DNA of 63,766 bases from Chlorokybus atmophyticus (Eukaryota; Plantae; Mesostigma and Chlorokybus algae): NCBI GenBank assembly GCA_009103225.1, contig RHPI01003508.1, forward strand, positions 62,235 through 126,000, given 5' to 3'. The notes below the pieces were generated by a model, which saw only the letters and a list, made by a program, of their open reading frames with translations, had not been told where the DNA came from and did not search any database. The position numbers were made by a program, and so were the translations under genes. Shown piece after piece: positions 42,385 to 63,766 of the stretch; position 1 is the first letter of the stretch; the number at the start of each line of letters is the position of its first letter.

Positions 42385-45300
42385 ATGCAGCATCCACACG
42401 CGGCGCTGCAGCGCAGGGACTACGCCGCCTTCCTGGACGCTTGCGGGGCGGGCGGCGTTGGATTGGCAGCATGGGCGCCGTACGCCCCGGCCCTGGGCAT
42501 GGCCGCTGTGGAGCAGCTGGACCAGGCCCAGGCGCAGACGCAGACGCAGGCTGGTGGAAACAACCCAGAGCAGCGGGACAAGCTGAGACTGTGAGTACAG
42601 CGAGCAAGCAGCTCATCATGCTTGACACGCATTGCGGTTCCAGTCTTATTGCCGTAGCAATGCTGTGTGGTCAGTGCAACTTCGACTGCTCGCACAGGTG
42701 GTTACAATGAACAGTAGCAGCCTATCTTGCAGTATGGGCTCCAACTGTAATTATCTGAGACAATGATTATCTCGGACAGCGTGTACAGAAAAGTGGACAA
42801 CGGATGGATCCGTCGATTTGTCGGATGGTAGCAGTTATTCAGCGCAACAAAGCGTGTGTAGCTTGGCATGCTTGTCAACTGAGCAGCACAAATCATGCGT
42901 ATGTGTGTTTTGCTGCTTCGTGTCAGTCAGTCCGTTACATGCACATGTCGGCTGTTGGATCAGCAAGCAACTTGTGTTGTACAACTGCCTTGGTGCTGTT
43001 CTGCCTGCATGCTTGATGCGCGTTCAGTGACTTGGCTCGCCGACGGTGCATATAAGCGTGCTGCTTTTGTGTTGCACACACTTGCTTCTCAAGCACTCAC
43101 AACTACCCATACGCGTGTGCATGCTCATACAAGTATGTGTGCAAACATGCACACATAGTTGGACACAACAAAGACATGTACACTGCGCTCGCATTCGCAC
43201 GCACGAATGCAAACATGAGTAAAAGCACACGCACATGCACAAGCCCCCCCCCCCACCACCACACACACAAACGCACACGCGCTGTCTCAACACTCCTCCC
43301 CTCTCCACACAGGCGTGAAGCTCTAACCAAGCTCAGCGACCCCTTCTCCTCCGCCGTCCAGTACGCCGAGTCTGCCCGTTCGACCGGTCTGTCTGCCGCT
43401 CTGCAAGTTGTCGTCGAGGAGGGTCGGCGTGGTGCTCAGGACTTGTCCACCGCCGACGCGGACGACTTCGATGCCGCCGACACCGTGCAGAGGATGCTGA
43501 TCGCCGCACTGCAGCTGCGCCAGCTGCTTGTGGAGAGCGAAGCTGGGCATGGTTGTGGACAAGCAGGAGATGTGGCAATGGTGGGGGCGAGTACCGTGTA
43601 CGACAGCGAGGGGATGGCGAACGAACTGGCACTGGTTGTGCCGATGCTCACGCTCAGTTTTCCTCACCTATTCCCAATTGGTAGGAACGCACACGGCTTC
43701 TCTTCTTCAACTCTTCCGTGCATGCATGTGTGCATGCATGTATACAAACACAGAGCGTGCTTGCCCCATGCAGAAGCGTGTCTGGGTGCACATGCATACA
43801 CACGCATGCACGCAGACGCATGCACATGCCTGCACGTAATTGTTACGTCACCTCGCCTCACCAACCCGCACACATGTCTCACGCAGGCCCCGTGGCAAAG
43901 GCACTCTCCGGGCTACCTGGCGGCATTCAGCTCCTCGCTGCGCTGGCGGCCAACACATGCGAGGGCGACGGGGACACCGCAAGCGTCCGTGCGGTTGTTG
44001 ATGCGGCTTTTGGGCACCTCAACACGTTGGAACGCGGCAGTGAGGTTGCTGCCGCAGCAGTGCTGTCAAGGCTCTGTCTACTTGCACCACCAGCCACGAG
44101 TATGGTATGTTGAGTTGATGCCGAACCAACCAATCGCTGTATGTTCATTTGTTGACTCACTTACGCATTGTTTTGCTGTTGTGCAGGTGCGTGCACATCT
44201 TGTTGAGAAGCAGCTGCTGCCTGAGATGGTGTTGCAGTTGACAAGCGACTTGCACGACGAGGTGATTGAGCAGCAGTTGAGGGTTGTGTGTACTTGTGGT
44301 CAGTTACAACCCACAAGCACACAATGTTATCACGTCATTGTGCTAACGACCAGTGTGCTGTCATTTCTGCAGCTGGAGTTCCTGACTTCAGTCGTGTTTG
44401 GTTTGGAAGCCAAACGGGACTGGCTGTTGGCCCATCTGGCATCCAGTCAAAGGTCCATCAGAGGACCGCCTTCATCCCAACCCCAGCCCAAGCCAGTCCC
44501 GTCATCCTCCGGTTCTGAACTAGGTCCTGAACCCCAAACCCACTCCAAACGCGGCCGTCCCGACATAATCCCTCTCGGCAGGACTCGGGAGGCAGCACCC
44601 GGGCCGGATACAGGACTTCCCGAAGCGAGCCCGTTGGCCAAACGACCCCGATTGGGAGGTCCCGGGACCCTCTCAGCACCTCTCCCCAGGACCTCGCAAG
44701 CAGCTAATAACCCTGTTCCCGTCCCCGCACCCGTTCCCATCCCGGCCGTGTCCAGGACCTCCTCCTTCTCTTCAGGTGCGGCGAACGTACACGCAGCCAA
44801 CATATCCCTCCGAGTGCGCGAGGCTCTGCTCGTGGACGCACAAAGAACCCTGGAGTTGAATCAGGAGAGGGATAGGGACTTGGATGGTCATGCACGCAAG
44901 AGATTGATGTGGTCGGAGCGTGCACTCAGACACCTGCGGCTGTTCTGCGTGCTGGTTGGGGCGGGCGGGCTGCGGCCGTCGGGGGAGGAGATGTCCATGT
45001 GGCTCACCGCAGGTGAGTACGTTACAATAAAATGCGCAATTCAAAAAGAGTGGCTATGTACATTACAAACGCATTAGTTACAACTGTGGATGGGGCCTTC
45101 ATTGTCCTTAGCTTTTGTTGTATTTCTTGTTGATGATGCATATGCGGCTAGTTAGGCGTGCGAACAAGTTGTGCTGCAGCACAAGTACTTGTGGCTGCTG
45201 ATGACTTCGGTGGTGCGCATGTATCTGCGTGTGTGTGTGCAGTTGCAACAGCACGGGAAGAACGAGGACGAGCACCTCCGGCTTCTCCACAGCATCAGCA

Positions 45301-47393
45301 ACATCAAGAGGAGGAGCGGCTCTTGTCGGCAGGGACGCTGCGGCTCAGCCTGAGCTTCCTGTGTCTATCGCAGGGGCTCACGGCGCCGTCCTTCCGACCG
45401 TTGCTGCAGCGCGCAGTTGGCAGAATCATCTATCATCACCGACAACCTGTTCTTGGCAATGGGGAAAGCCAAGCCCATGCACTACCGCAAGCACCACCAC
45501 AAGCAGAAGTACAAACACAAGCGCATGCACAAGTACAGGCACAAGCACAAGTACAAGCACGAGAACAACAAGTACTAGTGCAAGGGCAAGGGTTTGTCAA
45601 AGAGACTGCCGAGGAAGAGGAGGCCAGGCAGTTGTCTGTCTGGCTTGGCACGCAGTTGTACCTCCGACAGTACGTGCTCAATGTTGCCTGCCAGCATGTG
45701 TCAGCACTTAGCACAAACCCCACATAAATAAACCCCAATCCTGCAGGTTTCCTGCTATAGCTGATGCTGTCCGTGGCGCCCTTGGCGTGCACGTTCGCGT
45801 GCCAAGCACCGCGCTGCGGGACGTTGCAGAGGTGGCCTCTGCTGCAGGTGAGTGAAGCTCTCGTAAAGCACCCACGCAGCTTGCAAAAACAGGCATGCAC
45901 GCACCCACACATGCACGCACACGCCCGCACACGCACGCGTACACATGCTCGCACGTTTGCATGCACCTACGCACTTGTGTTCGTACGTGCATGTGTGCGT
46001 GTGTGCACACACATGCGCGCGTGTTCACACGCACACATACATGCGCGCGCATACGCACACACGCTGACATGCACAGGCTTGCTGGCTCCCGATGACCTCG
46101 CCGCCACCGCCGCTTCCATTCACACACGCGACACGGAACCCGCGGACTCCCCTGCCGCACAGATGGCCCTCGTCGCTTTGCGCCAGCTGTTGGAGGCGGG
46201 CGTGTTGCATCATCCCAGTAAGGCCGACATCGCCGGCTTCGCTGTGTGGCAGCTGTTTGCGCAGAAGACCGCATCATCAACATCATCGGTCAACCCGCAG
46301 TTGTTGGCCTTTCTGCGTGCGTTGGCTTTGCAAGACACACACGTGATAGCCGCTCCCGCTCTCGAGTCTCTCTTGCACGCCGAGGGGGGTGATGTTGGCA
46401 CCGATCGCGTGCGTGTGCTCGCGACGTGCTATGCGCTTCGTGTTGAGGAGGCCGCGCGCACGGGGCGCGTGAGGATTGCGGATGTTGGCGTGTGGGACGG
46501 CGTGCTCACGACTCTCCCTGTCATGCATTGCCTTCTCTTCATGCGCCGCAGCGGCACGGTGTACCAAGACCTTTACTCTGAGGTACTGCTGCTTATACGA
46601 CTGGTGTGCTGCGTTGGGTGAGAGGTGTTGCCAGCTAATGTGTGTATGTGGCATGGTGCAGTGTCTGCAACTTGCGACGGAGCTGCTGCCAGAGCAAACC
46701 TCAGCTTCTGCGCTGGAGCGCCTGCAGGCCGAAAATGGAGACGATCATCACACTGAACATCACGATGACAGCCTCAACGCTACTCTGGTACTTGAAAACC
46801 TATGTTGGTGCATGTGTGTGTGTGCATGTGCGTGCATGTTCTGCTTTCATCTGTTTGTGAGTTTGTGTGTACATGCATGTGAGCATGTACGTATTCATGT
46901 GCTTTTGTGTCTGTCCATGGTTGCATGCTGCAGTCTTGTATGCTTACTTGTCCTCCATAGGACCCGGACGCCTTACAACGCGCTCTCTCAGCCCCGTTAT
47001 CTGACCCAACATCCACCTCCCACTGTTTGCGCGCCTTCATCAACCACACCAAGCGCACTTACGACCCAAAAGGGTCTCTCCCTTTACACTCATCCGTCAT
47101 GGAGTCCATCTCCCCGCTTCTGCTTCGACACAATGAGAGCCAGAGCAATCCCCTCAAGGCGCTGTTCGTGGAGTGGTGGCTCGCGCTTCCGATGTGCGCA
47201 AAGGTGCCACTGTTCCCGCGCTTGATGGCTGCTCTTGGAGTGGACGGCGGCGATAACAACAACAACAACAGCAACAATGGTGCCAAATGCAGCCTTGAGA
47301 AGATGCGGCTCTCGCCGCTGCGGGTTCTTGCTTGCGATGCATGGTGCTTCCGCATTGCACCCGTGCTTGAGGTTGGTGTTGGTTACATAATGC

Positions 47394-47479
<86 letters not shown>

Positions 47480-48834
47480 TTCGTGTTTGTTTCGATGGTA
47501 CTCGCAGTTGGTGCTGAAGGTGTACGGCATGCTGCTTGCAATGAACCGGCGCTTAGCCATGGCAGCGCGCAAAAACAAGTACTCATCACTGCTCGTTTGT
47601 CACACGCCAGCTTCATCAGTCCAACCCTCGTGTGTACTCGCGGTAACACAACGTAGTGCCGTCTGCAGAATGGAGAATGGCAACAGCTCCATCGTCACGC
47701 CCTCGAACACGTCGTCCTCATTGCTGCTGCAGGCCAGCGCGGGGGTCCAGATGCTGCTGGAGGTGCTGATGGAGCTTGGGGGAGGTGGGGAGGGTGAGCA
47801 ACAACTCGTGCAACAACAACATGACGGGCAGAGAGGGGGAGAAGCAAAGCCACGAGAGATTATCCTCAAGTTTCTGGATCGCGCGTTTTCGCAAGAACCC
47901 CTCCTGCTGAAGCTTGTGCACTTTCAAGGGTACACAGATAGGCGGTTCACGCAGTGTGTGCTTACTGCTGCGGATTGAGATCAGCTGCAGGCAGTGCCAT
48001 GCAACAACAGTTGAAACACACCATCATTCAAGGCATGCATGCACATGTAGCGTGTAGCGCGCACATGCAAGCCACTTGTCTGCTGCATGCAGGTTTGACC
48101 TGTCGTTGGTTGGGCCACTCGCGTCTGGCGCACCATCCGTGCGGCGCATGTGCGTAGACTTCCTGCCCGAGCTTCTCACACAACCCCAACCAGAGAGACA
48201 GGTACCCGAGAACTGGGTTGTTGTTTAACATATGTTGTGTGCGTGTATGTGCGTGACATGGCAATGCATGCATGCAGGTGCTTGGTGTGGCGCTGGCGGG
48301 TGCGCTCGAGGACGCGTGCCCTGAAGCGCTTGCGCAAAAGGTTGTTGCGTTCGTGCGCTCACTGATGAGCAAGCCGACACCCACTGAACACATCCAGAAG
48401 GCAAGTACCACTCAAATGCAGAGTCTCCATGCATCCACGATGGTGTGTGCATGCGCGTGCAGGTGTGCGTGTGTATGTGGGTGCTTGTGTCATGTTTGCG
48501 TGTTTGCCTGTGTTTGCGTGCGTGTTTGTGTGCGTCATGCGAGTGTTGTCAACTATGGCCTGTGTCACAGATGTTGTTGCCACTGGCATCCTGTGCACTG
48601 GCTGTCCCGAAGGTCGCCATGGAATGCGTTAAGATATTCCAGGTGTGCGTTGGCATTGCATTGACATCAACACCTGTGACTAATATATGACAACTACATC
48701 AACTCCAGCATCTTCAGGACTGTGCGGAGGTATCACGTGCGCTGCAGCCAGATGCCCCTCCAAGAGATGCCGGCTTGCACGCGGCCGCTGCTGCCGCCGC
48801 GATGAACTTCTTTGAGCGCAGGGCTGCCACATGA
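42385..48834 (+). CDS. INTS2: Integrator complex subunit 2 (multi-exon helical scaffold)
   Basis: C-terminal exons LLLKLVHFQGY, LCVDFLPELLTQPQPERQV and MLLPLASCALAVPKVAMECVKIFQ are colinear with metazoan INTS2 (IAKLVHFQGY, ICLDFIPELIAQPELEKQI, MPTLPSLVSFCRAFP) as recalled; gene length fits a protein above 1000 aa. Confidence 0.8.
47394..47479. repeat. (GAT)n trinucleotide microsatellite, about 28 units, in an INTS2 intron
   Basis: Directly visible; lies between a donor near 47344 and the acceptor ctcgcag near 47507. Confidence 0.95.
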
Positions 48835-58125: not shown

Positions 58126-59437
58126 ATGACAGCCATGCACTCTTCCACCTTGCACACAGCGCCCTCCATGTCCGCGCACGCCATCATCGATGATCCAACA
58201 TCAGCACCAACAAACACTCACAGCAACAACAACAACAGTATCAGCCCTAAAAAGGTGTACAAGAGCGCTGTTGTGGTTGTCCCTCCCGAGCATGCCTGGC
58301 CTCAAATACAGGTGCGTTGTGCACAAATCCAGGTGAATCTAGTTGATCAATCAACCACGAGAATATTCTGTTGCATGTGGAGTCAGTGTGTTTTCCCCAA
58401 CGCAGGCATTAAGACAAGTCCACGACAAGCATTATGCGCGCTGGATGCCGCACATAACCCTGCTTTACCCCTTCTACGAGAACTCTGGGGACGCATTTGC
58501 GCAAGCCGCCGCGCGCATGAGAGCGAGACTGAGTGGGTTTGGTGGCAAGTTTGACCTGGAGCTGAAAGAGTTCAAGTCCTTTCGCCACAACAGGTACACA
58601 TAAGCCAGGTGTCTTAGGCGTGCAGAGCAGTTGCGTAACTTGACGAATTTGCTGTTGTTGTGATCACGGTGTTGAAAAGGGCGTGCTTGTGTAGGTGTGC
58701 GCGAGTGTGCGTGCATATATCATTGTTGTACTTGTATTCGTTTGCGTGCGCGTATGCATAAGTGTGTATTGTGCCTGTGTGTGTATGAGAGATAGTATGC
58801 TACATTGGTAGCATGCAAGGTGTCACGCACATGCAATGTCATACACCACACTCAGCACAAGGCACATGCAATGGGTGCGGTTGTCGTGTTTGTGCTTTTT
58901 ATCTGTTTTTCTTTGTTGGTTATGGGCGTGCTTGTTCAATGCTGTAGGAGTTGCACGCTGTGGTTGAATCCTGGCGGCGATATCGACAGCCACATGAGCC
59001 GCCTTCAGGCTGCGCTGCAGGCAGAGTTCCCTGATTGCGACGACGTAAGCCGCATCAGCAGCAGGTGGGTTTGCTGTTCCAAAATGTCTGCAAGTATCAA
59101 GTGCTGTGATTGTCACTCCAAACATGTGCTGCTGTTCAGATTCACTCCCCATTTGTCTGTGGGCCAGTGGCCTACCAACAAGGCAACAGAAGCGGTTGAT
59201 TCGCTCTCGCGCGAGTGGCAACCTCTCAGGTTTGCTCCATGTTGAGGGTTGTTAACACTTTGTGAACATGATGTCATTCCGCCGCCGCTCATGACATGTA
59301 CTGTGTGTTCAAGGTTCACTGTGGATCGAGTGTGCATCATATCAAGGAAAGGGTTTCACGACCCATTCACAATCAGAGAGACAATTATGCTTCGAGATGA
59401 CCAACAGGCAGAAAACGCTGTACAGCCGTGTTCATGA
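58126..59437 (+). CDS. 2H phosphoesterase (LigT / 2'-5' RNA ligase superfamily, LENG9-like)
   Basis: Two HxT/S motifs: KSAVVVVPP..LRQVHDKHYARWMPHITLLYPF and FTPHLSVGQW; C-terminal FTVDRVCIISRKGFHDPF. Confidence 0.85.
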
Positions 59438-59652
59438 CGTGCATTGCAAGTAATAGTTGAATGGTTGTGCAAGCAGTCCATCTGCGCACATCACGTGTGC
59501 ACACGCGCAGACAACCACATTCATGTGCTTCTTGTCATCATCGCCAGCATAACTTACTGTATAGTAGGATAGAGAAAGATAGGTGGGTACTGTACACAGG
59601 TTATAGAGTACATGCAGCAACATACACAAAAACGAAAAGCGACCCCAACACG

Positions 59653-62600
59653 TCATTTGCGTAAGCGCGAGCTGCGCCGTGTGCTTTCTGCAGCCAATGC
59701 TTGCGCGAGTGCAAAGTCCATCTCAATGGTGCTCATGGCCGCAGATGTAGACTTCGGGACGTCGCGGTCAGTTCCGCCCCGATCAGACTCATCATCCGAA
59801 CCGTCCGTGTGGCGCGCACGCCCTCTTCCCGACCTTTTCCGCGTGAACTTGGGCGTGACAACCGGCACTTCCTCGTCGTCTTCCTCCTCCTCCGCTTCAC
59901 TCTCCTCCTTCTCCTCCTCCTCCTCATCGTCATCCTCCTCCTCATCGCCACCCTCAGTCTCTTCGGCCACTTGCGCCGCAAGTTTAGACAGAATGTCTAT
60001 CTTGAGCTCCTCTTTCTTCCTGCGCTGGCCGCTGCGTGACCGCTTGTGCGGGGAGACAGGTAGTTCCTGATGTTGCTCTTCATCATCATCATCATCATCA
60101 TCGTCCAATGAAGGAGCTTGGCGTTGGGTTGACTTTGCTGGAGGGTCGGTCGGAGTGAGCGGACGTTTGCGAGGCCGCCCGCGCTTTCGCTTCAACGCGT
60201 CACTGCTTGGGTCCAACCCAGACCCTTCTTTCTTGAGCACAATGTGTTTCCGCCGCTCGTCTTCACCTTCAGACAGATTAACACTCACATTCCCGCTTAC
60301 ATGTCGTCTGGCCAGCCCTCTCCTTTTTCTCTTTCTCCTCCTCCCGTCCTCCTTATCCGACCCCTTTTCGCGCTCTTCGCTCCCTCCAGATGATTCTTTC
60401 ACAATGACCGGTCGCGGGTGCTTGCGTGCGAGTCTCAATGCCAGCTTTGCCAGCGCTTGCAAATCATGCTTCTCGAGGTCATCCACAGAAGGCAGATCGG
60501 CCGCCGCTTGCGCCACAAGTGCAGTCAACTCTGAGCTTTTAAGCTCTGCCGTGTGCAATGGCTTGTCCACAGTTGCTGCTGCTGCTGCTGGTGTTGCTGC
60601 TTGAACACGTGGGGACTCTGTAGGTTGAGCTGGTGTTTCTGGCAGTGGGAGCTTGGGAGGCCGGCCGCGTTTCCACGGCATTGAAGTGGTTGCTGCTGCT
60701 GCCGCCGCAGCAGCAGATGTTGACGCTGTTGATGCATGCGCGAGCGCTTCAGATGTTGTTGCCACTGGCGGCTCTTTGATGCGTACTTCGGGCACTTCGA
60801 GTCGCACTTTGGGAGGCCGCCCGCGCTTCTTTGGCACGCGCGGCAGCGCATTCAACAGAGGTTTTTGTGCTGTTAAAAGCATCTTCTCCTCAGAAGCTTT
60901 ACTGGTGTTGTCTGGTTTGTCTTCGTCGATGTCTCTCTTGTTGTCTTGATTTCTTGCCTTGTATCTGGTTTTCTCTTTCTCTCTGTCTCTGTCTCTGTCT
61001 CTGTCTCTGTCTCTGTCTCTGTCTCTGTCTCTGTCTCTGTCTCTGTCTCTGCGACTGTTCTTGACTTTTTCTCTGGCCCTGTCTTCATCTCCATCTCTGT
61101 CTCTGTCTCTGTCCCGTGCACTGGTGCCACGCTGTTTAAGCACCTTCCCCAGCCTGTTGACCCTGCGTGCTGAGCCGTTTTCCTGCTCCGAGGTCTTCTT
61201 GTCGCTGTCTTCCGGCTCATCTACGACGCGCTTGATGCGCTTCTTCAGCACCTTCGGCAGCGGATTGGCCCGCCTCTCTCTTGGAAGGGGTTCGACTGCT
61301 TGCTCCTCCTCTTGCTCTTCACGCTTCTTTTCAACCTTCGGCAACGCATCAGCCCGTCTCTCTTTTGCATGGGGCTCAACTTGCTCCTCTTCTTTCTCTT
61401 TCCCCTTCTGTTCAACCTTTTGTTCTACCTCTGCAACATCATCAGCACCTTGCAGTGTTTCTTTCACAAGCTCTTGAGATGCATCAACCCCTCCACCAGC
61501 AATGGCAATGTCAGGCTTCATGTCCACAACCACATCTGCTGCCACATCTGTGCATGCCTCTTCGGTGACGGGAACTGTTGGTTCGCATGCAATGGCAAGG
61601 TCGGTCTTTATGTTCACAACAACATCTGCTTCAACATCTGCGCATGCCTCCTCTGTGGCGGGAACCATTGGTGATAAGTGGGTTTGTGCTTGCTCCTCCA
61701 CTTTCACTGCAACTGGAACTGGAACGGGATCAGGCTGCGTGTGTTGTGGAGTGGGTTCACGCTTGACTTCCACAGTGATTGACTCAACAGCGAGTTCACT
61801 TGCTGCGGGGTGAAGGTGGCTGTGTTGCTCCGAGTGAGCGGATGCCGCTTTGAATGCTTCTGCTCTGCTATGCTCGTCTGCAATGGCGGCGGGAGCCTCC
61901 GGTGAGGGCGGTGGAACATGCACAAGCTGCGGGGGCGTTGTCGGTGTAGGCGGTTGGCCCACGCGCTTGAATACAAAGACCGCGTACAGACCTGCCCACA
62001 TAACACACATGAACACACTCATGCACGCAAACATACACCCACGCAATGCAACAAAGCCATGACTGACAATAGAGACACTGAGGTAGCGTGCACCTAACTG
62101 TGTATATGTACATTCGTGTGCGCGCGTGTGTACACACATATGGTGCATCAAGGCTGGCACGAATCAGAGACACAGAGGCAGCTTGCATGTAACTACACTT
62201 GAAAGGCAAGTATTCACTCACCAACTTGGTCCAACATGGCTGCATGCACCTTTCCATACGCCTTGCGGTCGAAAGTGATCACCTGGCGAAAGGCGTCTTC
62301 AAAAGTTGCCCTGCAGACACAGCGCTGTAAGACTTGGATTTAGCAAGCAAGTTTGATTGGGTCAACGCTACACACAGCACACAGCTGTACTATTCTGTAT
62401 ACACACACAACACACATACTTGTTGTCGTCATGAAACTCTTGCAGGTTAGTTATCTCCACCATCTCCAACCCAACACTCTCAGCCAACCTGTGCACACAA
62501 AGTCCAGTTCGGCTCCATTGTTTCACATGCAGGATGCTTGAAAGCGACAATCAGCATGCCTGATGAGTGTTGGAAAATGCACAAGGCACTGCAGCCGTGG

Positions 62601-63637
62601 TCGCAGGCCGTCATCCAGACGCAGCCGATAACGCGTGCCATAGTTGTTGAACCTGCATAATCAGGTCATGCGGTTGACAAGATGGCGATAACAACACCAC
62701 AAAAGGTCTTGACAGAAAATGACGGCGCGTAAGGCAACATACTGTGCATCGTCAAACTGTATGCTGTAGAATTCCGACTGGATGATGGATTGCCCGACAA
62801 GAACTGCTTTCTGTGCTTTATACCTGCGGCAACAACAACATTAAACAAGAAAACTGCAGTGCTTGTTTGTGCGCGCGAAACGCGTATGCGCGCATGCGCT
62901 TATGCTTGCGTGTGTGTGCGTATATGTGCTTGTATGCGGTCTGGACTCACCATATCATGGACGAGTCCGGCACGATGCCAAACAGCAGGCCACCAACTCG
63001 AAGACGTCGCGCGGCGCATGCCAAGAGGTTCCGCACAGTGCTCTCTTGCATGAAGAAGTCCTGCAAAAGCAACACAAAAGCAAGGTTGGCAGCACAATCA
63101 ACACGCCGACAAATTGATTGCAAATAGTTTGCATCGCGGCACGCTGCAAACAATTGCACCCACCTGCAGATGCTCGTTGCACACAGCGAGGTCAAACACC
63201 TCATCCGGCTGCAAATCGTCATGGCCCTGCTTGCAAAAAGTTTCAAGCTACGGTCAGAGAAGCATGCAACAAATTACTAAGAAATTACTGATACATTACC
63301 AGGTTCGTGCACTCCAACAAAATATTTCCGCTGCTCAACTTACGCGGGAAAGGTCGATCTGCTTAAACTCCGGCTCGAATCCCGGTTTCACCTCGGCCCA
63401 GCGCTGTTTGGCGCGGCTGAGGCCCGTCTCATCCGGCTCTGAAATGGTGTTTACATGATTAAGACATGCGCGTCAACGTGGTGGCACCCTTATTTGGCAC
63501 CAGTGCTGACTGCAGCAACAAAATCGCACCAACACAATCATTGCATGTGATGTAAGCCCACCTATGTCCAAGTATTTGGAAATGCTGGTGCTCGCCCATC
63601 GCACTGCATCTGCACCCCTTCCGCAGAGTTCCAACAC
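59653..63637 (-). CDS. mRNA cap guanine-N7 methyltransferase, plant type 2 (At3g52210-like), with long C-terminal extension; 5' end outside the window
   Basis: Exons VLELCGRGADAVRWASTSISKYLDI, LQDFFMQESTVRNLLACAARRLRVGGLLFGIVPDSSMIW, HFPTLIR, GLEMVEITNLQEFHDDNK and GLYAVFVFK follow the type-2 paralogue; the last exon 61991-59653 is stop-free. Confidence 0.88.
60981..61050. repeat. (GTCTCT)n hexamer encoding an RD dipeptide tract on the minus strand
   Basis: Visible repeat inside the 59653-61991 exon. Confidence 0.95.
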
Positions 63638-63766
63638 CTGCAACGCCACCAATTTATTAAGATCGTTTAAGCATTCAACAGTCACATTTAAACTGAAGAA
63701 ACTAGTACAATACGGATATCAATCATAAAGGCAACACTTAGAACCGAGACTCTGGTCGTAATAAAT

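Follow-up and report, generated by a model that had tools for sequence, protein, structure and literature searches.

A stretch of 63,766 nucleotides from Chlorokybus atmophyticus (NCBI GenBank assembly GCA_009103225.1, contig RHPI01003508.1, positions 62,235 to 126,000 of the forward strand), hereafter the window, carries on its minus strand a gene for a probable RNMT-family protein with a long C-terminal extension. The last exon of this methyltransferase-like gene runs through the sequence GLYAVFVFK, at which the enzyme domain ends, and continues for 770 codons to the stop, in agreement with the length of about 770 codons estimated in the original prediction, which was made from the sequence alone. 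The tail encoded by these codons contains three AT-hooks. We are highly confident that this is a single gene, the product of which has an RNMT-family domain followed by a disordered tail with some islands under selection. What is new here is an RNMT-family protein with a previously unreported C-terminal, AT-hook-bearing disordered extension. The original prediction already knew of no such architecture, and this stands: a literature search for a cap methyltransferase and AT-hooks in one protein found no such paper and returned only METTL1 and HMGA2 reviews, while a search for "cap guanine-N7 methyltransferase 2" found none.

Structure and transcripts of the methyltransferase-like gene

Contigs from four public runs (X1 to X4) were aligned to positions 58300-63766 of the window. 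In X1, X2, and X3, the contigs leave out the predicted introns to the letter (CT..AC on the plus strand). These runs were therefore taken as transcriptome assemblies, and the in-frame junction 62222/61991 into the tail exon was found in all three. In X1, a contig of 1866 nt extends from beyond 63640 across all enzyme exons to 61123, and another one covers 60963 to 59312 without internal joints before it enters the exons of a convergent plus-strand neighbor. The tail is covered in this manner, again without internal joints, at 61989-61123 and 60963-59312, and the sole contig gap for the window's own strain (60963-61123) is a (TCTCTG)n repeat encoding an RD dipeptide tract, at which both the X1 and X2 assemblies break. 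X3, which bears the same organism label and is 88-97% identical to the window (roughly 90%), provided one 2687-nt contig, from 63438 to 60112, that joins enzyme exons to the tail at the same splice junction, bridges the RD repeat in frame, and includes the positions of all three AT-hooks. The proposal of one gene with one transcript is thus borne out, since RNA contigs from two diverged lineages join the tail, in frame, to the methyltransferase exons. Transcripts that splice out the tail or end before it, the outcome named beforehand as speaking against this proposal, were not seen among these contigs, which cannot exclude minor isoforms.

The tail lies in a minus-strand open frame of 835 codons (59653-62160), the first 56 codons of which are intron; the start of the last exon at 61991 is set by a canonical acceptor (…GGGCAG/GT) that closes the GT..AG intron 61992-62221. 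Of the eight introns between the exons listed in Table 1, seven are GT..AG and one is GC..AG. The latter (62489-62559, minus strand) has the borders GCATGC...GCACAG and is spliced out in X1, X2, and X3 alike. At its 5′ side the gene extends past the window end, and the RNA contigs add at least 217 letters upstream of 63640 that are absent from the window. We take GLYAVFVFK to be the final strand of the RNMT fold. Since this strand sits on the tail exon, exon skipping could not drop the tail without breaking the fold.

The contigs of X4 cross exon-intron borders without joints, and this run was therefore taken as genomic DNA. Its label names another organism (organism B, 2018), its depth is low, and at this locus it is 95-100% identical to the window; it may be a mislabeled, mixed, or environmental sample with the same alga.

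The enzyme domain was searched exon by exon, with a gathering score of 26.6 bits for PF03291, the Pfam family of mRNA guanine-N7 methyltransferases. Exon 63060-62951 matched this family at 20.1 bits (E 3.7e-4, profile positions 155-188) and exon 63640-63562 at 13.5 bits (E 0.04, profile positions 65-88), each value being that of a single short exon; the two matches are collinear, and there was no competing Pfam family. The sole PDB sequence matches of exon 63060-62951 were cap guanine-N7 methyltransferases (9mg0 and 9mg4-6, E 0.06-0.08). Five other enzyme exons, which are too short to score, had no PDB sequence match, and a HMMER search with a 36-residue methyltransferase exon, a query too short to be informative, gave 0 matches at E <=0.001. 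These sequence matches suggested that the enzyme domain probably belongs to the RNMT family (PF03291; RNMT/Abd1/Ecm1).

Motif I of the domain is VLELCGRGADA, in exon 63640-63562. Relative to the S-adenosylmethionine (AdoMet)-binding consensus of RNMT, VLxI/LxxGxGxDL (PMC9839713), it keeps VLxL and GxGxD but has a one-residue spacer where the consensus has two, and A for the last L, and the shorter spacer agrees with the alignment of 23 residues of the exon to 24 positions of the PF03291 profile. Judged from its residues, motif I is a partial departure from the consensus and not a loss. The original prediction had called it degenerate; the departure is there, but the term is overstated, since GxGxD is kept.

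AT-hooks and other features of the tail

An AT-hook (Pfam PF02178 / SMART AT_hook) consists of a GRP core with basic flanks, as defined in PMC4615771, and all three cores in the tail have this form. The pattern [KR]RGRP[PRKG][KR] matched the tail three times (at residues 389, 441, and 603 of the last-exon product), compared with 0.0004 matches expected by residue shuffling, and 0 of 20000 residue-shuffled tails reached three matches. When all six frames of the window were examined, the three AT-hooks were the only RGRP sites with basic flanks on both sides. The cores lie where the original prediction had seen them.

Two further RGRP-containing sequences were noted in the window. A lone SKRGRPD at 44550 (plus strand), in a 673-codon open frame inside an INTS2-like gene (42385-48834), has basic residues on one side only and is probably no functional AT-hook. 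The antisense frame of AT-hook 3 (60166-60186) also reads RGRP (LRGRPRF), which reflects the near-palindromic CGNGGNCGNCC codons and has no significance.

An AlphaFold2 single-sequence model of the last-exon product had a mean pLDDT (predicted local distance difference test) of 45, with 546 of the 779 residues below 50, and the only helices in the tail were at residues 295-358, 486-524, 653-679, and 761-776. As modeled, the tail is a disordered region with short islands and no folded domain. Two tandem duplications lie within it, and four of its tracts are microsatellite-like. The 90-bp duplication encodes two VP.TEEAC.DV.ADVVV..K.D.AIA units, with the TEEACxDVxADVVV pair at 61656-61615 and 61566-61525. 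Besides the units of the 84-bp duplication, a regular expression found two more degenerate copies of L[PG][KR]V.K[KQ]R, at 61158-61129 and 60852-60823, the latter of which runs directly into AT-hook 1. The repeats were established by Tandem Repeats Finder (TRF) and regular expressions, while blastp of the tail against itself returned the identity match only. An SGRGRAR patch is also present. The RD tract, the two-copy TEEACxDVxADVVV repeat, the basic clusters, and the poly-E/D stretch, all of which had been described earlier, were found at the positions given in Table 1 and above. A reading of the C-terminal helix EMDFALAQALAAES as a ubiquitin-interacting motif, based on a by-eye likeness with the Ser displaced by one residue, was rejected, there being no match to the Pfam family of this motif at E up to 10.

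Relatives of the tail were sought by several routes. Pfam gave nothing on the 778-residue tail but a chance EBNA-3 match (E 2.3), and the helical module (residues 481-533) had no Pfam or ESM Atlas family. Word-index protein searches with the whole tail, residues 366-640, and residues 365-640 returned no relative, not even the protein itself; these negatives are weak, as the candidate lists were probably taken up by low-complexity words and, in the absence of a self-match, the databases apparently lack the proteome of this organism. Of 599 pattern matches to residues 365-640 in a metagenome scan, none was confirmed, and the ESM Atlas had no usable match for the whole tail or for residues 476-540. 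The tail is unique within the window, which ruled out a dispersed repeat or transposon fragment.

Table 1. Exons of the methyltransferase-like gene and features of its tail (positions in the window; residues numbered in the last-exon product)
Feature	Positions	Strand	Remarks
Exon 1 seen	63640-63562	-	Open, phase-consistent; carries motif I
Exon	63438-63344	-	Open, phase-consistent
Exon	63226-63164	-	Open, phase-consistent
Exon	63060-62951	-	Open, phase-consistent; best PF03291 match
Exon	62823-62743	-	Open, phase-consistent
Exon	62652-62560	-	Open, phase-consistent
Exon	62488-62420	-	Open, phase-consistent
Exon	62310-62222	-	Open, phase-consistent; joins tail exon at 61991
Last (tail) exon	61991-59653	-	Presumed final strand (G)LYAVFVFK 61991-61966; 770 further codons; stop 59655-59653
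90-bp tandem duplication	61499-61672	-	TRF: period 90, 1.9 copies, 83% matches; residues about 108-168
84-bp tandem duplication	61250-61419	-	TRF: period 84, 2.1 copies; encodes VEP..ERRA..LPKV.KKR units
RD dipeptide tract, RDRDRDRD ... (RD)x11	60980-61116 (runs 61116-61093, 61050-60985)	-	In charged region, predicted single long helix, residues 295-358
AT-hook 1, KKRGRPPK	60831-60808	-	Residues 388-395
AT-hook 2, WKRGRPPK	60675-60652	-	Residues 440-447; lies within PWKRGRPPKLPLP
Helical module TAELKSSELTALVAQAAADLPSVDDLEKHDLQALAKLALRLARKHPRPVIVKE	60394-60552	-	Residues 481-533; predicted helices 486-497, 508-524
Basic cluster RRRKRKRR, resembling a nuclear localization signal	60342-60319	-	Residues 551-558
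AT-hook 3, KRKRGRPRKR	60192-60163 (core KRGRPRK 60186-60166)	-	Residues 601-610
Acidic block	59866-60105	-	Poly-D/E 60105-60076; basic helix residues 653-679; poly-E/D 59946-59869
C-terminal amphipathic helix MSTIEMDFALAQALAAESTRRSSR	59665-59736	-	Residues 753-776; predicted helix 761-776

Divergence of the tail between close relatives

The tail was compared with its counterpart in X3. Over about 1.9 kb, its frame has survived 10-12% divergence and no fewer than 9 indel events. Every tail indel reported in X3 keeps the frame (6; 1 out and 1 in; 3; 2 + 1; 6; +3; and 3 letters), and at one place X3 has 94 letters for 100 nt of the window. Substitutions were counted in residues 413-533, for which 40 are listed; AT-hook 2 and the helical module lie inside this segment and AT-hooks 1 and 3 outside it. 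Third codon positions accounted for 26 of the 40, and 24 were synonymous versus 30% expected (P 9e-5). In residues 499-533, within the helical module, 11 of the 12 substitutions were synonymous (P 1.2e-5), and PWKRGRPPKLPLP, which contains AT-hook 2, is unchanged in X3, the two nucleotide differences inside it being both synonymous. These data revealed purifying selection on at least AT-hook 2, with its flanks, and the helical module.

The RD-repeat region (60870-61124) is 69 nt (23 codons) shorter in X3 than in the window.

Possible functions of the tail

The most likely role of the tail is that of a nuclear tether that binds nucleic acid. The basic clusters would direct import of the protein into the nucleus, where the AT-hook array would hold it on AT-rich chromatin DNA, or on nucleic acid generally; tethering of this kind would concentrate the methyltransferase-like domain where transcripts are made, a role like that of the N-terminal domain in human RNMT. 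As in HMGA, binding could be tuned by the downstream acidic tracts bending back onto the hooks, and the conserved helical module is probably a site of protein-protein contact. That nuclear import, holding by the AT-hooks on AT-rich DNA or chromatin, and a position of the methyltransferase-like domain near nascent transcripts all apply together is plausible, with the chances for and against about equal. The more specific idea that an HMGA-like AT-hook array tethers an RNMT-family methyltransferase to AT-rich chromatin, which would amount to a DNA-based placing of cap (or other guanine-N7) methylation at transcribed sites, independent of the carboxy-terminal domain (CTD) of the polymerase, is one that we consider rather unlikely. 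The original prediction had proposed a chromatin-tethered cap methyltransferase or a pseudo-enzyme scaffold. The gene, the transcript, the AT-hooks, and the constraint seen in the helical module and at AT-hook 2 are in its favor, whereas a target in chromatin rather than RNA, and the status of a pseudo-enzyme, are still conjectural.

The nearest functional precedent of the tail would be the noncatalytic N-terminal domain of human RNMT, a recruitment domain and hence a case of a noncatalytic tether on a cap methyltransferase (PMC3778707). Both proteins join a PF03291-type domain to a basic noncatalytic region, but the algal extension is C-terminal, is about six times longer, carries AT-hooks, and has no detected sequence similarity to the human one, and the algal motif I is one residue shorter. 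HMGA (HMG-I/Y) proteins are intrinsically disordered polypeptides of about 100 residues that carry three AT-hooks and, behind them, an acidic C-terminal region, and that have no enzyme domain. The tail resembles them in disorder and in the order of three AT-hooks and acidic tracts, while its hooks lie 50-160 residues apart in 770 residues fused to an enzyme domain, so that it is not a small stand-alone protein of the HMGA kind; word searches of the tail gave no HMGA-like match beyond the hooks. RAM, the RNMT-activating miniprotein, is likewise charged and unstructured, associates with a cap methyltransferase, and binds RNA, but it is a separate subunit to which no similarity was found, and the likeness is one of functional analogy only.

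Within the plant lineage, the type-2 homologue of Arabidopsis, At3g52210, is reportedly a short, single-domain protein. What the original prediction said of its AdoMet motif agrees with the published account, in which At3g52210 is without the VLxI/LxxGxGxDL motif and is considered an unlikely cap methyltransferase (PMC9839713). It and the algal protein are both RNMT-family members of the plant lineage with an AdoMet motif departing from this consensus; in contrast to At3g52210, the algal protein keeps GxGxD (VLELCGRGADA) and carries the 770-residue tail.

Several observations weigh against a tethered cap methyltransferase. AT-hooks can bind RNA as well as DNA (PMC4615771). On the side of the enzyme, each per-exon PF03291 score is below the gathering score, and motif I departs from the RNMT consensus. 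On the side of the tail, nucleotide difference is 10-12.5%, compared with 2.9% in the enzyme exons (3-4 times faster), and the linkers are nearly neutral, with 13 of 28 substitutions synonymous (P 0.057). Because of this fast divergence and the near-neutral linkers, most of the tail length may play no sequence-specific role. In addition, relatives of the tail were not found in searches of limited reach, and the tail has so far been seen only in one genus.

Other explanations of the tail were weighed on the same evidence. It could be mainly an RNA-binding, substrate-recruiting arm, a built-in counterpart of vertebrate RAM in which AT-hooks, RD tract, and RGR patch grip nascent RNA, which we regard as unlikely. 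Alternating RD tracts occur in RNA-processing proteins, and the tail has such a tract as well as the SGRGRAR patch. To this can be added that some canonical AT-hooks bind RNA (PMC4615771) and that RNMT has in RAM a partner that is charged and unstructured (PMC5137418 and PMC7145595). Yet the hooks of the tail are of the classical short [KR]RGRP[PR]K type and not of the extended RNA-binding type described in PMC4615771, Pfam and word searches of the tail revealed no similarity to RAM or any RNA-binding domain, and a difference of 23 codons in the RD tract between close relatives argues against a precise role of that tract. It is improbable to a similar degree that the tail is largely a neutral, lineage-specific disordered expansion, grown by tandem duplications and slippage and selected only for nuclear import or solubility, with incidental AT-hooks. 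Such an origin would fit the two tandem duplications and four microsatellite-like tracts, the rapid and, in the linkers, near-neutral divergence, and the failure of the searches to find tail relatives, but it is at odds with three full AT-hook cores far beyond chance, with strong purifying selection on AT-hook 2 with its flanks and on residues 499-533, and with a frame that outlasted the substitutions and indels across about 1.9 kb.

A gene-model artifact, in which the frame after GLYAVFVFK would be 3′ untranslated region, a separate gene, or sequence removed from the mature mRNA, is already largely refuted and very improbable. It draws on the break of the X1 and X2 contigs at the RD repeat, which leaves the window's own strain without a single whole-gene contig, and on the blindness of contigs to rare isoforms, given that intron 61992-62221, if retained, would stop translation right after …DQVGE. 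Against it stand the X3 contig that bridges the repeat in frame and the joint-free contigs on either side of it, the excess of substitutions at third codon positions, the frame-keeping indels, and the length of the stop-free frame itself, 779 codons being unexpected by chance.

The preferred reading, a nuclear tether on an RNMT-family domain, touches on a step for which lineages differ, namely, the route by which a cap methyltransferase reaches nascent transcripts. The yeast enzyme does so by binding the phosphorylated CTD. Human RNMT has its N-terminal recruitment domain (PMC3778707), and the second RNMT-family protein of plants has been argued not to be a cap methyltransferase (PMC9839713). 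A family member with its own predicted nucleic-acid-binding tail, from an alga that branches at the base of the streptophytes, could be used to test for action at chromatin, and the case presents a long disordered tail in which selection is seen on a few short islands only. Nuclear proteins commonly have disordered extensions with AT-hooks, and for that reason the find is not a major surprise.

The convergent neighbor on the plus strand (58403-59312 and beyond) encodes a 2H phosphoesterase (PF13563, 2′-5′ RNA ligase superfamily). Its exon 58346-58600 matched PF13563 with an E of 4.9e-12. The gene has the HxT/S motifs HITL and HLSV, and its GT..AG introns lie at 58592-58945, 59062-59136, and 59228-59311. 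An RNA contig passes from the tail exon straight into this neighbor, which indicated that the 3′ ends of the two genes overlap or abut.

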